A stretch of DNA of 64,000 bases, taken from the NCBI RefSeq assembly GCF_006345805.1, contig NC_043001.1, positions 84,258,001-84,322,000 on the forward strand. Reading direction: 5' to 3'. Shown here piece after piece: positions 2,157 to 62,172 of the stretch. Both the position numbers and the translations under genes were made by a program. This DNA comes from Octopus sinensis (Eukaryota). The notes under the pieces were generated by a model, which was not told the DNA's origin, did no database searches, and saw only the letters and a list, made by a program, of their open reading frames with translations. The stretch's first letter is position 1. Each line of letters begins with the position of its first letter.

Positions 2157-2192
2157 TTTCTATTCATGAAATGCTACGGTCGACAGTAAACG
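2157..2192 (+). CDS. Exon 1 in window, short linker (x)[11 protein letters not shown]
   Basis: Acceptor cttctctttgttttAG, donor G|GTGAGT, 36 bp, phase 1-1, open frame. Confidence 0.65.
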
Positions 2193-62100: not shown

Positions 62101-62172
62101 TTGCATTTGTGGTAAAAACCATACAACAATCGAAAATACCCGGGTCATTGAGGGAAATTCTTCACATCACAA
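2157..62172 (+). CDS. Partial multi-exon gene (27 traced exons) for a large, probably secreted protein with 11 CBM14-like Cys-rich domains, linker exons and a giant Gly-rich repeat; 5' and 3' ends lie outside the window
   Basis: Every exon has a pyrimidine tract plus AG acceptor, a GT donor and phase 1 at both ends. All except the Gly exon (3986 bp) have lengths divisible by 3. Junction codons in sequential order give no stops. Many N-x-S/T sequons (NNT, NIT, NYT, NES, NGT, NRT, NST, NMT). No signal-peptide exon or clear terminal exon was found in the window. Confidence 0.85.
2537..3145 (+). mobile_element. Cluster of SINE family B copies (tRNA head plus Meta-like ctttcatcctttcggggtcgataa domain)
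   Basis: ggcgagctggcagaa A box, gagttcaaattcc B box; one full and several partial tandem copies. Confidence 0.8.
3154..3572 (-). mobile_element. SINE family A copy
   Basis: High similarity to 321-726. Confidence 0.8.
3701..3883 (+). CDS. Exon 2, CBM14-like domain 1 (VSKLC...TCIFD)
   Basis: tactttccAG / T|GTAAGC, 183 bp; Cys spacing 8-2-17-9-12; YYQC, GTIW and C-x-aromatic motifs. Confidence 0.92.
4051..4772 (+). repeat. Tandem duplication of a ~392-bp low-complexity block
   Basis: 4051-4443 and 4444-4772 are nearly identical apart from a 1-nt indel and (CAC)n lengths. Confidence 0.9.
5028..5108 (+). CDS. Exon 3, linker [27 protein letters not shown]
   Basis: ttttatttgtttctAG / G|GTAACC, 81 bp, phase 1-1, open; Trp at position 5 as in several other post-domain exons. 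Confidence 0.7.
6331..6510 (+). CDS. Exon 4, CBM14-like domain 2 (ETMC...ACVYG)
   Basis: ttgatttcAG / G|GTGAGA, 180 bp; Cys spacing 8-2-17-9-12. Confidence 0.92.
6999..7181 (+). CDS. Exon 5, CBM14-like domain 3 [61 protein letters not shown] (absent from the ORF track)
   Basis: Translated by hand. cttcttctatttctccAG / A|GTAAGT, 183 bp, same Cys spacing. Confidence 0.92.
8343..8495 (+). CDS. Exon 6, Pro/acidic linker [51 protein letters not shown]
   Basis: ttcgactttcAG / A|GTAAGT, 153 bp, open; ends in the REPIDPT motif. Confidence 0.85.
10512..10691 (+). CDS. Exon 7, CBM14-like domain 4 (RTNFC...KCIY)
   Basis: ctatttcAG / G|GTGAGT, 180 bp, same Cys spacing. Confidence 0.92.
11593..15578 (+). 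CDS. Exon 8, giant Gly/Ser/Thr/Gln repeat exon ([10 protein letters not shown])n with one frameshift at ~12330
   Basis: tccattttgcAG, then [22 protein letters not shown] leads in frame into the 30-bp repeat. After an extra GA at 12330-12331 the repeat frame continues to ...[11 protein letters not shown]. Phase-1 donor candidate G|GTTAAG at 15579, otherwise stop TAA at 15581-15583. Confidence 0.85.
11740..15330 (+). repeat. Coding minisatellite, 30-bp unit ggtggtagccagggtacaggaggagctacg, roughly 120 units
   Basis: Directly visible; near-identical units at ~11750-13570, more diverged units afterwards. Confidence 0.95.
16290..16605 (-). mobile_element. 3' fragment of an RLE-type LINE (R4/Dong-like) between (TAA)n tracts
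   Basis: Minus strand reads ...AEIQKIVLM(G)[11 protein letters not shown] with a 1-nt frameshift, resembling the QK-x-VLLGTA-x-ILRK C-terminus of R4-clade ORFs, then a UTR and (AAT)n tail. Confidence 0.55.
17298..17990 (+). mobile_element. Tandem cluster of about three SINE family B copies
   Basis: Repeated gttctgagttcaaattccgccgaggtc blocks and a duplicated tail. Confidence 0.8.
18089..18163 (+). CDS. Exon 9, linker [25 protein letters not shown]
   Basis: tttatgttttccAG / A|GTAAGA, 75 bp; RETIDVN motif variant; a second in-frame acceptor (ttccAG at 18100) would shorten it by 12 nt. Confidence 0.8.
19085..19267 (+). CDS. Exon 10, CBM14-like domain 5 (TTQFC...SCVYE)
   Basis: ttttgttttaaAG / T|GTAAGT, 183 bp, same Cys spacing. 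Confidence 0.92.
19860..20068 (-). mobile_element. SINE family B-related copy
   Basis: Reverse complement of the family B head and body. Confidence 0.7.
20179..20283 (+). CDS. Exon 11, linker [35 protein letters not shown]
   Basis: ctccgtacatttccAG / G|GTGGGT, 105 bp, open; Trp at position 5; QLPAG resembles QIPAG of exon 23. Confidence 0.75.
21106..21168 (+). CDS. Exon 12, linker [21 protein letters not shown]
   Basis: tatatcttccAG / G|GTAGAG (weaker donor), 63 bp; MKAVNPN matches MDAINPN of exon 17. Confidence 0.7.
22324..22692 (-). mobile_element. SINE family A copy (diverged)
   Basis: Same head, body and tail blocks. Confidence 0.75.
24721..24820. repeat. 100-bp loopless palindrome (two 50-bp arms, 2 mismatches)
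   Basis: tagaagtagatccgctatggtcttaccgctaagaaatgttctcaagaaaa|ttttcttgagaacatttcttagtggtaaaaccatagcggatctacttcta. Confidence 0.95.
27125..27307 (+). CDS. Exon 13, CBM14-like domain 6 (ETTLC...RCLYD)
   Basis: ttcgttttgccAG / A|GTAAGT, 183 bp, same Cys spacing. Confidence 0.92.
28393..28506 (+). CDS. Exon 14, linker [38 protein letters not shown]
   Basis: ttttattttttAG / G|GTATGA, 114 bp, phase 1-1, open. Confidence 0.7.
32334..32612 (+). mobile_element. SINE family C copy
   Basis: Matches the 1465-1769 copy. Confidence 0.8.
33705..34178. repeat. Long inverted repeat, arms 33705-33879 and 33997-34178
   Basis: The arms are highly similar reverse complements around a ~117-bp spacer. Confidence 0.9.
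34369..34419 (+). CDS. Exon 15, linker [17 protein letters not shown]
   Basis: ttattttactttgcAG / A|GTATGT, 51 bp; RVPVNPM motif variant. Confidence 0.8.
35541..35844. mobile_element. hAT/Charlie-like MITE inserted in a mariner fossil
   Basis: TIRs cagtgattcttaa ... ttgagaaacactg; 8-bp flanks gtctctac / gtgtatgc. Confidence 0.6.
35957..36240 (+). mobile_element. tRNA-derived SINE family D inserted in the mariner fossil; related copies at ~39496-39700, ~45300-45535 and ~61232-61428 (-)
   Basis: ggcgcatggtctagtggttagag head, gtgttcttgagca block, and gtgcaatcccatg...catgac tail shared with the 45300 copy. Confidence 0.65.
39781..40223 (-). mobile_element. SINE family A copy
   Basis: High similarity to 321-726. 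Confidence 0.8.
41196..41378 (+). CDS. Exon 16, CBM14-like domain 7 (TTNLC...RCIYE)
   Basis: gtcttttctatAG / G|GTAAGA, 183 bp, same Cys spacing. Confidence 0.92.
41465..41690 (+). mobile_element. SINE family B copy
   Basis: Head and body as at 2537. Confidence 0.75.
41712..41943 (-). mobile_element. SINE family B copy, inverted relative to the preceding one
   Basis: Reverse complement of the 2537 copy. Confidence 0.8.
44300..44582 (-). mobile_element. SINE family C-related copy
   Basis: Same head and gaaaccgggaaacc tail block. Confidence 0.65.
44864..44932 (+). CDS. Exon 17, linker [23 protein letters not shown]
   Basis: aattttatttcAG / G|GTATGA, 69 bp; DAINPN motif; two N-glycosylation sequons. 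Confidence 0.8.
45805..45987 (+). CDS. Exon 18, CBM14-like domain 8 (ATSLC...RCVYD)
   Basis: ttaatttttacAG / C|GTAAGT, 183 bp, same Cys spacing. Confidence 0.92.
46265..46785 (-). pseudogene. Highly diverged 28S (LSU) rRNA 3'-end-derived insertion
   Basis: Minus strand is colinear with conserved eukaryotic LSU motifs: gactcttc, SRL-like AATATGGAAGAAAC (46638-46651), GGGATAATGGTTGAACGCATCTAAG, and gcgatctatcgaa near the 3' end. GC-rich relative to the intron. Confidence 0.75.
47262..47303 (+). CDS. Exon 19, linker [14 protein letters not shown]
   Basis: tattaatatttcAG / G|GTAAGA, 42 bp; Trp at position 5. Confidence 0.7.
   Translation, partial: VLKSGCLLIRKLA
47723..47797 (+). CDS. Exon 20, linker [25 protein letters not shown]
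   Basis: tatttttcacAG / A|GTGAGT, 75 bp; REPINPN motif. Confidence 0.85.
47940..48600 (+). repeat. Degenerate ~17-20-bp minisatellite (acagacgataatcacaa-like)
   Basis: Recurrent gataatcaca and acagacga words. Confidence 0.6.
49552..49734 (+). CDS. Exon 21, CBM14-like domain 9 (TTNLC...RCIYD)
   Basis: cttctacttcacAG / C|GTAAGA, 183 bp, same Cys spacing. Confidence 0.92.
50592..50633 (+). CDS. Exon 22, linker [14 protein letters not shown]
   Basis: ccttttttatgttttAG / G|GTAACG, 42 bp (same length as exon 19); Trp at position 5. Confidence 0.65.
51140..51368 (-). mobile_element. SINE family B copy
   Basis: Near full-length reverse complement. Confidence 0.8.
52266..52799 (-). mobile_element. 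SINE family A copy (diverged)
   Basis: Same blocks, more substitutions. Confidence 0.7.
53567..53990 (+). mobile_element. SINE family A copy
   Basis: Head cgttcagtccc, cagcggttcggcaaa block, tail caagtaaaaagaataaaa. Confidence 0.75.
54590..55530. mobile_element. Two back-to-back copies of a chimeric element: tRNA-like head, (AAT)n, and a Penelope-like tail with a hammerhead-like motif
   Basis: About 54660-54810 is the reverse complement of about 55350-55500; heads gtggttaagagt(g/a)cgggc face outward from ~55000. Confidence 0.65.
55650..55727 (+). CDS. Exon 23, linker [26 protein letters not shown]
   Basis: gattttctttcatAG / C|GTAAGT, 78 bp, phase 1-1, open. Confidence 0.75.
55968..56450 (-). 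mobile_element. SINE family A copy (diverged)
   Basis: Same blocks. Confidence 0.7.
56706..56888 (+). CDS. Exon 24, CBM14-like domain 10 (LSKMC...QCVHK)
   Basis: tctctctttccAG / G|GTCAGT, 183 bp, same Cys spacing; same subtype as domain 1. Confidence 0.9.
57461..57523 (+). CDS. Exon 25, linker [21 protein letters not shown]
   Basis: cttttctcttgcAG / A|GTAGGT, 63 bp; EPIDPT motif. Confidence 0.85.
57673..57920 (+). mobile_element. SINE family B copy
   Basis: Near full-length. Confidence 0.8.
58432..58868 (+). mobile_element. SINE family A copy
   Basis: ggttcagtcccactgcgtggtaccttgggcaaat ... aagtaaaagagtaaaag. Confidence 0.8.
59714..59896 (+). CDS. Exon 26, CBM14-like domain 11 (TTPLC...KCVYG)
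   Basis: tttcttctcacAG / C|GTAAGT, 183 bp, same Cys spacing. Confidence 0.92.
62086..62172 (+). CDS. Exon 27, linker [29 protein letters not shown]
   Basis: ttgtttgatttccAG / A|GTAGGT, 87 bp; Trp at position 5 and a REILHIT end motif, which suggests another domain exon beyond the window. Confidence 0.7.

Follow-up and report, generated by a model that had tools for sequence, protein, structure and literature searches.

Proteins that combine several CBM14 (peritrophin-A) modules with low-complexity spacers are of an already familiar kind. Insect peritrophins and mucin-like peritrophins are secreted, carry tandem peritrophin-A modules with low-complexity linkers and are presumed to cross-link chitin multivalently. 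The C. elegans eggshell proteins CBD-1 and CPG-1/CPG-2 combine CBM14 arrays with Ser/Gly-containing low-complexity regions. In cephalopods, a scaffold formed jointly with chitin has been proposed for the squid beak proteins called DgCBPs (bioRxiv 10.1101/2020.01.08.899344). Here, we analyze a 64,000-nt stretch of the Octopus sinensis genome (NCBI RefSeq assembly GCF_006345805.1, contig NC_043001.1, positions 84,258,001 to 84,322,000, forward strand; hereafter the window), which holds 27 of the 31 coding exons of the multi-CBM14 gene LOC118763360. Octopuses form several chitinous structures, namely beak, radula, stylets, and sucker and gut cuticles. To our knowledge, the protein partners of these structures are almost unknown and all characterized cephalopod chitin-binding proteins come from squid beak.

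With a probability of about 0.62, the product of LOC118763360 is a secreted multivalent chitin cross-linker that combines derived CBM14 modules and a flexible Gly-rich spacer in a single chain. This reading builds on the analogy to peritrophins, CBD-1/CPG-2 and the squid beak DgCBPs. The protein would be secreted into a chitin-containing extracellular matrix, where multivalent contacts of its 11 modules with chitin chains would connect the fibrils, and the Gly-rich array would serve as a long, flexible and hydrated tether between a four-module and a seven-module anchoring block. The locus offers a complete and conserved candidate chitin-matrix partner in octopus for biomaterials work, and it overturns nothing known.

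First, we focus on the identity and extent of the gene. A profile built from the alignment of its 11 modules was searched against 1.84 billion representative proteins and matched XP_036358737.1, isoform X50 of O. sinensis LOC118763360, with 11 full-length matches (946 bits), and GAB1598772.1, a partial hypothetical protein of Argonauta hians, with seven. Placing exact peptide matches of XP_036358737.1 on the DNA and enumerating the GT/AG pairs that reproduce the protein gives a single GT-AG solution at each of 30 introns. The gene comprises 31 coding exons across 94,853 bp on the + strand, and the window contains exons 4-30. A first-pass annotation, made from the letters of the window without database searches, had proposed 27 exons between 2157 and 62172, all of phase 1-1, that encode 11 CBM14-like domains within one gene it could not name. 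The mapping returns the same 27 exons, the full protein contains 11 CBM_14 stretches, and NCBI lists a single locus as "uncharacterized protein". LOC118763360 is therefore already one RefSeq locus, though uncharacterized. It extends beyond the earlier span by three 5' exons and one 3' exon, all outside the window. A division into several separate genes is rejected, as -25734 to 69119 forms one model with consistent phases. The exons, numbered after the spliced mapping of XP_036358737.1, are listed below in window coordinates (negative values lie upstream of the window; D1-D11, CBM14 domains 1-11).

Starts at -25734, + strand: exon 1, start codon and probable signal peptide, 25.7 kb ahead of the window
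-5266..-5204, + strand: exon 2
-1198..-1116, + strand: exon 3
2157..2192, + strand: exon 4, end of the Cys-containing N-terminal region, 36 nt, phase 1-1
3701..3883, + strand: exon 5, D1, 183 nt, phase 1-1
5028..5108, + strand: exon 6, linker
6331..6510, + strand: exon 7, D2, 180 nt
6999..7181, + strand: exon 8, D3, 183 nt, adjoins D2 without a linker exon
8343..8495, + strand: exon 9, linker, EPIDPT at its end
10512..10691, + strand: exon 10, D4, 180 nt
11593..15578, + strand: exon 11, Gly-rich, 3986 nt
11712..15166, + strand: tandem array within exon 11, ~115 copies of a 30-nt unit
12332..12333, + strand: extra AG within exon 11
18089..18163, + strand: exon 12, linker
19085..19267, + strand: exon 13, D5
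20179..20283, + strand: exon 14, linker (NPLWSQ...)
21106..21168, + strand: exon 15, linker, AVNPN at its end
27125..27307, + strand: exon 16, D6
28393..28506, + strand: exon 17, linker (MRITFDP...)
34369..34419, + strand: exon 18, linker, VPVNPM at its end
41196..41378, + strand: exon 19, D7, the modelled domain
44864..44932, + strand: exon 20, linker, AINPN at its end
45805..45987, + strand: exon 21, D8
47262..47303, + strand: exon 22, linker
47723..47797, + strand: exon 23, linker, EPINPN at its end
49552..49734, + strand: exon 24, D9
50592..50633, + strand: exon 25, linker, 86% identical in Argonauta
55650..55727, + strand: exon 26, linker, 81% identical in Argonauta
56706..56888, + strand: exon 27, D10
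57461..57523, + strand: exon 28, linker, EPIDPT at its end
59714..59896, + strand: exon 29, D11
62086..62172, + strand: exon 30, C-terminal tail
69091..69119, + strand: exon 31, stop codon, 5 kb past the window

Introns 1 and 2 are of phase 2 and the remaining 28 are of phase 1, so that all 27 window exons, from 2157-2192 to 62086-62172, are flanked by phase-1 introns. By our own estimate from typical phase frequencies, 28 phase-1 introns in a row have a probability of ~0.3^28 and are not a chance outcome. The 11 modules are encoded by single exons of 180 or 183 nt, each bounded as AG|..|GT, with two bases preceding the first full codon and one base trailing the last. All of them (11/11), together with the other window exons (16/16), belong to class 1-1, the mobile-module class of Patthy. 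The locus is hence a clean example of a phase-1 exon-shuffling architecture, and the proposed one-domain-per-exon layout with motif-bearing linkers is borne out by the junctions and by the linker sequences, which carry [EV]P[IV][DN]P[NT] ahead of modules and x-x-x-W behind them. Without the Gly-rich exon 11, the window exons add up to 3141 nt or 1047 codons, the number given earlier.

The encoded chain runs from a probable signal peptide through a 5-Cys region, four CBM14 modules and a Gly-rich array of ~1,330 residues to seven further CBM14 modules. With exon 11 repaired as described below, the conceptual protein has 2462 residues. Exon 1 encodes MPFSQTGTKTIFGWSALILLCFLSQTAHA|QQ in a typical n-h-c signal-peptide layout. 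A search upstream of the window, as suggested in the first-pass annotation, located this probable signal-peptide exon at -25734. Exons 2-4 (window -5266 to 2192) encode the N-terminal region of the mature protein, which contains five cysteines in the order C-x3-C ... C-x3-C ... C. As the mature protein has an odd number of cysteines (71), one would be left unpaired in this 5-Cys region, where it might form a possible inter-chain disulfide. Outside the Gly-rich array, 21 N-glycosylation sequons are present. CBM_14 is the sole Pfam family matched in the full protein.

The modules were first visible among the open reading frames (ORFs) between stops on the + strand as eleven six-cysteine peptides of ~60 residues, next to a very long Gly-rich frame. 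Their assignment to CBM14 is supported by sequence and predicted structure. All ten modules scanned singly against Pfam CBM_14 (PF01607) score 25.6-38.9 bits at a gathering score of 22.1, and the full protein scores 220.6 bits over 11 stretches. An AlphaFold2 (AF2) model of D7, computed from the 11-module alignment, has five short strands and a confidence (pLDDT) of 93.6. In a Foldseek search of this model against the PDB, ranks 1-11 are all CBM14/peritrophin-A structures, ten of them with a probability of 0.99-1.00, and the query-normalized template modelling (TM) scores are 0.47-0.67 for ranks 1-11 and 0.53-0.67 for ranks 1-10. These matches, which place D7 in the small beta fold of the tachycitin/CHIT1 type, include Der p 23, the CBM14 of CHIT1, Aplysia EHEP, Avr4, Blo t 12, tachycitin and Der f 23. 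A single-sequence AF2 model of the D9-D11 segment reached a pLDDT of 42.7 and is uninformative on linker structure.

Canonical CBM14 domains are held by the disulfides C1-C3, C2-C6 and C4-C5 (PMC10619976). A profile-to-PDB alignment equates the canonical C1, C3, C4 and C5 with module residues C16, C34, C44 and C57. The canonical C2 position is occupied by a residue other than cysteine in 11/11 modules, and a canonical C6 was not found in the module exons, which end three residues past canonical C5, or in the following linkers. Two additional invariant cysteines at module residues 4 and 13 form a C-x8-C pair in an N-terminal extension. The modules depart from the six-cysteine register of the family and, judged from this alignment, are a derived CBM14 variant. 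Since the lost C2 and C6 make up exactly one canonical disulfide, the gained pair plausibly replaces it, and C4-C13 is presumably a replacement disulfide; CBM14 would here exist in a variant with a swapped disulfide. W50 is invariant and Y22 and Y32 are nearly invariant across the 11 modules.

Exon 11 is the part of the gene in which the assembled sequence and the protein disagree. It begins and ends in unique sequence and contains ~115 copies of the 30-nt unit GGTAGCCAGGGTACAGGAGGAGCTACGGGT, which encodes a decapeptide (77% matches). The array is unique in the genome, where the other matches are generic Gly-rich ORFs of at most 40% identity. Its length of 3986 nt equals 1328 codons plus 2 nt and is thus not divisible by three. 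At ~12332 the sequence reads GGAGGAG-AG-CTACG as compared to GGAGGAGCTACG in the unit, and the extra AG moves the Gly frame. Upon removal of 2 nt, exon 11 becomes a run of 1328 stop-free codons in phase 1-1. The total of ~2375 codons given in the first-pass annotation for the window exons including this one is therefore correct if the extra 2 nt stem from faulty assembly or are skipped, and incorrect for the sequence as assembled. The conceptual translation consists of 45.7% G, 14.7% T, 10.2% S, 9.0% Q and 7.8% A; the array is aromatic-free and nearly uncharged, with 0.7% Pro and 2.5% acidic residues.

Up- and downstream of the break, the Gly frame behaves like coding sequence. No stop interrupts its 659 codons in the diverged 3' part of exon 11, compared to 13 and 55 stops in the other frames. 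Differences between units ten codons apart accumulate at the third codon position (394 vs. 270 and 260 at the other two), and 49% of the single-difference codons are synonymous in the Gly frame as opposed to 27% and 18% in the shifted frames. Hence, the 2-nt frame break is most likely an assembly error or an allelic artefact in the repeat.

The break might alternatively be real, which would leave either a truncated main product or true splicing inside the repeat that yields partial arrays. We consider this unlikely, though it is the most probable of the rival explanations. The truncated form would consist of the signal peptide, four CBM14 modules, ~246 Gly-rich residues and an out-of-frame tail stopping at 12746. 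In its favor, the assembly does contain the 2-nt insertion, and NCBI annotates at least 50 Gnomon isoforms for LOC118763360. We compared four of these, X4 (1941 aa), X7 (1929 aa), X31 (1839 aa) and X50 (1350 aa), which are identical outside exon 11, sharing the N-terminal 440 aa and the C-terminal 724 aa. All four skip about 11682-12640 by joining 11680/11681 to 12639/12641, and this 959-nt gap offsets the 2 nt. Further internal gaps (12890-13198, 13379-13639, 15242-15277; 36-2346 nt overall) follow, and several of the gaps are GT-AG-compatible. After a common RETAIG prefix, the largest share of exon 11 represented in any of the four is 777 of 1328 codons. The many in-frame skip isoforms predicted earlier from the phase symmetry are thus not seen in these models, which differ only inside exon 11.

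The Gly frame itself speaks against a real break, being open to either side of it with an excess of third-position and synonymous differences. Furthermore, no real intron of the gene is shorter than 419 nt, but two of the internal gaps measure only 36 and 39 nt, and the acceptors of the internal "introns" have a pyrimidine fraction of 0.25-0.35, compared to a mean of 0.75 and a minimum of 0.55 among the 30 real acceptors. Because of these purine-rich acceptors and very short gaps, which are unlike the real introns of the gene, the internal "introns" are implausible and most likely represent annotation work-arounds and repeat mis-alignments rather than splicing. The Argonauta model is in addition continuous from its Gly array into D5, and the modules downstream of the break are 75-87% conserved and therefore translated.

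The Argonauta protein also shows how old the arrangement is. The partial orthologue GAB1598772.1 starts within a Gly-rich array, with 600 or more of its residues present, and is collinear with exons 12-31 thereafter, in agreement with a single gene. Its D5-D11 correspond one to one to those of O. sinensis at 75-87% identity and its linkers are 31-86% identical, with exons 25-26 at 81-86%. Both linker motifs, [EV]P[IV][DN]P[NT] ahead of modules and x-x-x-W behind them, are retained. This collinearity indicates that the module array predates the Octopus-Argonauta split. The Argonauta array unit is roughly GGSGGSGNVGTGG and differs from the Octopus unit (43.8% Gly, 21.9% Ser in the Argonauta array), so that the Gly-rich block is conserved in position but replaced in sequence over time. 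A paper on the Argonaut egg-case proteome mentions only Pif-like ChtBD2 proteins, and the LOC118763360 protein is not among them.

The public O. bimaculoides models, XP_052824062.1 (160 aa, "chondroitin proteoglycan 2-like") and XP_014781817.1 (296 aa), each represent only a fragment. The earlier suspicion that the gene is fragmented or misannotated in public models holds for these and for exon 11 of O. sinensis; the remaining O. sinensis model is complete. The long Gly-rich repeat has been mishandled by annotation in the O. sinensis isoforms, the O. bimaculoides fragments and the partial Argonauta model, and the value for curation lies in one gene with 31 coding exons and a probable 2-nt assembly error. 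Searches with the 11 concatenated modules (658 aa) and with the C-terminal 307 aa returned no homologue, with isoforms and fragments hidden by the length window and clustering, and the gene was recovered by the profile search alone. Among the representative proteins searched, no orthologue was detected outside octopods. The next matches come from insects, fishes, lamprey, horseshoe crabs and Aplysia; they are multi-CBM14 proteins of a generic kind and are named, where sampled, cbd-1-like, CPG-2-like or balbiani ring protein 3-like.

How does the octopod protein compare with the described systems? It shares the tandem modules with insect peritrophins, having 11 in one NCBI model, of which D5-D11 are collinear in Argonauta. 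In contrast to the Pro/Thr/Ser mucin spacers of mucin-like peritrophins, its spacer is Gly-rich and Pro-poor and is no Pro/Thr/Ser mucin domain. The modules lack the canonical C2 and C6 and have an extra N-terminal C-x8-C pair, and the gene is a mollusc gene confined, among the proteins searched, to octopods. The similarity to C. elegans CBD-1 and CPG-1/CPG-2 is at the domain level without orthology, and the repeat unit is unrelated. The chitin-binding domain (CBD) of squid beak DgCBP-3 (PDB 7BWE) belongs to a cephalopod chitin-matrix protein with a peritrophin-A-like domain, a role we propose for LOC118763360 as well, but it matches the modules only marginally in sequence (E value 0.33, 14.3 bits), and the DgCBPs are small and have neither an 11-module array nor a Gly-rich exon. 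An unnamed and unrelated library protein, P0017, resembles LOC118763360 in having Gly-rich low-complexity spacers, (GGGGS)n, between CBM14 modules. However, its modules are canonical with six cysteines (..CDWPxNVxC), and it has many short linkers and not one array of 1,300 residues. The novelty claimed in the first-pass annotation was thus overstated, because multi-CBM14 proteins with low-complexity spacers are well known. What is new here is an octopod-restricted addition to the multi-CBM14 (peritrophin / CPG-2 / cbd-1-like) proteins, and its lineage-specific traits are the re-wired cysteines in all modules, the single decapeptide array of 1,300 residues and the symmetric run of 27 exons.

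Several observations weigh against a chitin cross-linker encoded in one chain. Exon 11 as assembled is not one open frame, and 4/4 isoforms avoid the first ~960 nt of the array. In the assembly (2.72 Gb, 13,516 contigs), no second copy or haplotig of the locus is present and only short matches to interspersed repeats are found. The signal peptide was assessed by eye only, the C4-C13 replacement disulfide comes from the alignment and the secondary structure of the model only, and a literature search found no paper naming LOC118763360. Moreover, the fold is no guarantee of chitin binding: this activity is absent from some CBM14 members, the residues involved vary across the family, and EHEP and Der p 23 are reported without chitin binding (PMC10619976).

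A more specific version of the cross-linker reading, which we regard as rather improbable, is an octopod-specific biomaterial. The array would then be an elastomer- or hydrogel-like decapeptide block of ~1,300 residues, anchored at both ends to chitin by 4 + 7 re-wired modules in a soft, periodically shed cuticle (sucker lining, gut), and it would be polymorphic in length and fast-evolving, as suggested by the different units in Octopus and Argonauta.

It is distinctly improbable that the protein is instead a CPG-2-like proteoglycan or mucin-like gel former, whose array would mainly carry glycosaminoglycan or O-glycan chains. Such a protein would coat a chitin scaffold (gut lining, egg envelope) with a hydrated layer that lubricates or acts as a barrier, and would not be a mechanical cross-linker. 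The array does contain 25% Ser+Thr, but with 0.7% Pro it is no classical mucin PTS (Pro/Thr/Ser) domain. PTS-rich windows occur in 25 of 151 related multi-CBM14 sequences (the 150 best representatives and one cluster mate). Xylosylation of Ser-Gly favors an acidic context. Ser-Gly dipeptides are present 23 times in the O. sinensis array, where few of them are acid-flanked, and 71 times in that of Argonauta (53 as G-S-G), yet the acidic content of 2.5% in the O. sinensis array does not fit this context. The 21 sequons outside the array are compatible with a glycosylated protein, although glycosylation is not readable from sequence. Finally, the name "chondroitin proteoglycan 2-like" of the O. 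bimaculoides fragment is an automatic transfer from its CBM14 domains.

That the modules bind a ligand other than chitin and the protein is no part of a chitin matrix is very improbable, since the CBM14-typical aromatics Y22, Y32 and W50 are invariant or nearly so in the 11 modules and in Argonauta, many-module CBM14 arrays are typical of chitin-matrix proteins, the next-best matches are cbd-1-like/CPG-2-like and octopuses are, as is generally known, carnivorous animals with several chitinous structures; these points outweigh the absent C2-C6 disulfide and the high structural ranks of two precedents, Der p 23 and EHEP, which are both reported not to bind chitin (PMC10619976). The ligands of Aplysia EHEP are polyphenols in the digestive fluid.

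A paralogue lies 40-48 kb upstream (C5:84209640-84217585, + strand). It shares the C-x8-C-x2-C modules and, for its first two modules, the phase 1-1 exons with LOC118763360. It differs in having three modules only, the third of which ends in a stop codon, and no Gly-rich exon is seen. These three CBM14 exons belong to a separate gene. In the third module, the canonical C2 and C6 coexist with the N-terminal pair, and with its eight cysteines this module is an apparent intermediate in the cysteine re-wiring. Two or three modules of the C-x8-C-x2-C variant also occur in the unnamed library proteins P0045 (329 aa) and P0070 (232 aa), in which the modules lie between a signal peptide and a Ser/Thr-rich stalk, and a transmembrane helix with a ...RCCCSS...GY.QH tail completes the chain. 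Membrane-anchored mucin-like proteins thus also contain the variant.

The remainder of the window is intronic sequence with repeats. Scanning the window for Rfam families and tRNAs gave no match. Two adjacent ORF fragments at 36264-36751 (+ strand) have no Pfam match, and we take them to resemble the C-terminal part of mariner/Tc1 transposases; Pfam scans of the other long intronic ORFs in the window gave no match either. Two families of interspersed repeats are present. Copies of a ~430-bp repeat (74-88% identity) are all intronic and contain a microsatellite core of TG/TA runs each, and copies of a ~240-bp repeat (78-91% identity), similar in size to short interspersed nuclear elements, are spread across introns in both orientations. 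In addition, the intron after D1 contains a T-rich/C-rich direct tandem duplication, and the intron before exon 26 contains an inverted repeat that flanks AT-rich trinucleotide runs. Minus-orientation copies are marked (-).

320-728, 3154-3574, 39789-40224, 22441-22621, 58440-58867(-), 53563-53997(-): ~430-bp interspersed repeat
2526-2769, 17289-17534, 17608-17791, 41486-41642, 57672-57917, 41713-41946(-), 51138-51369(-), 63082-63250(-): ~240-bp interspersed repeat
3979-4358 and 4371-4750: 383-bp direct tandem duplication, 98.4% identity
54657-54929 and 55232-55504: ~275-bp inverted repeat, 87% identity

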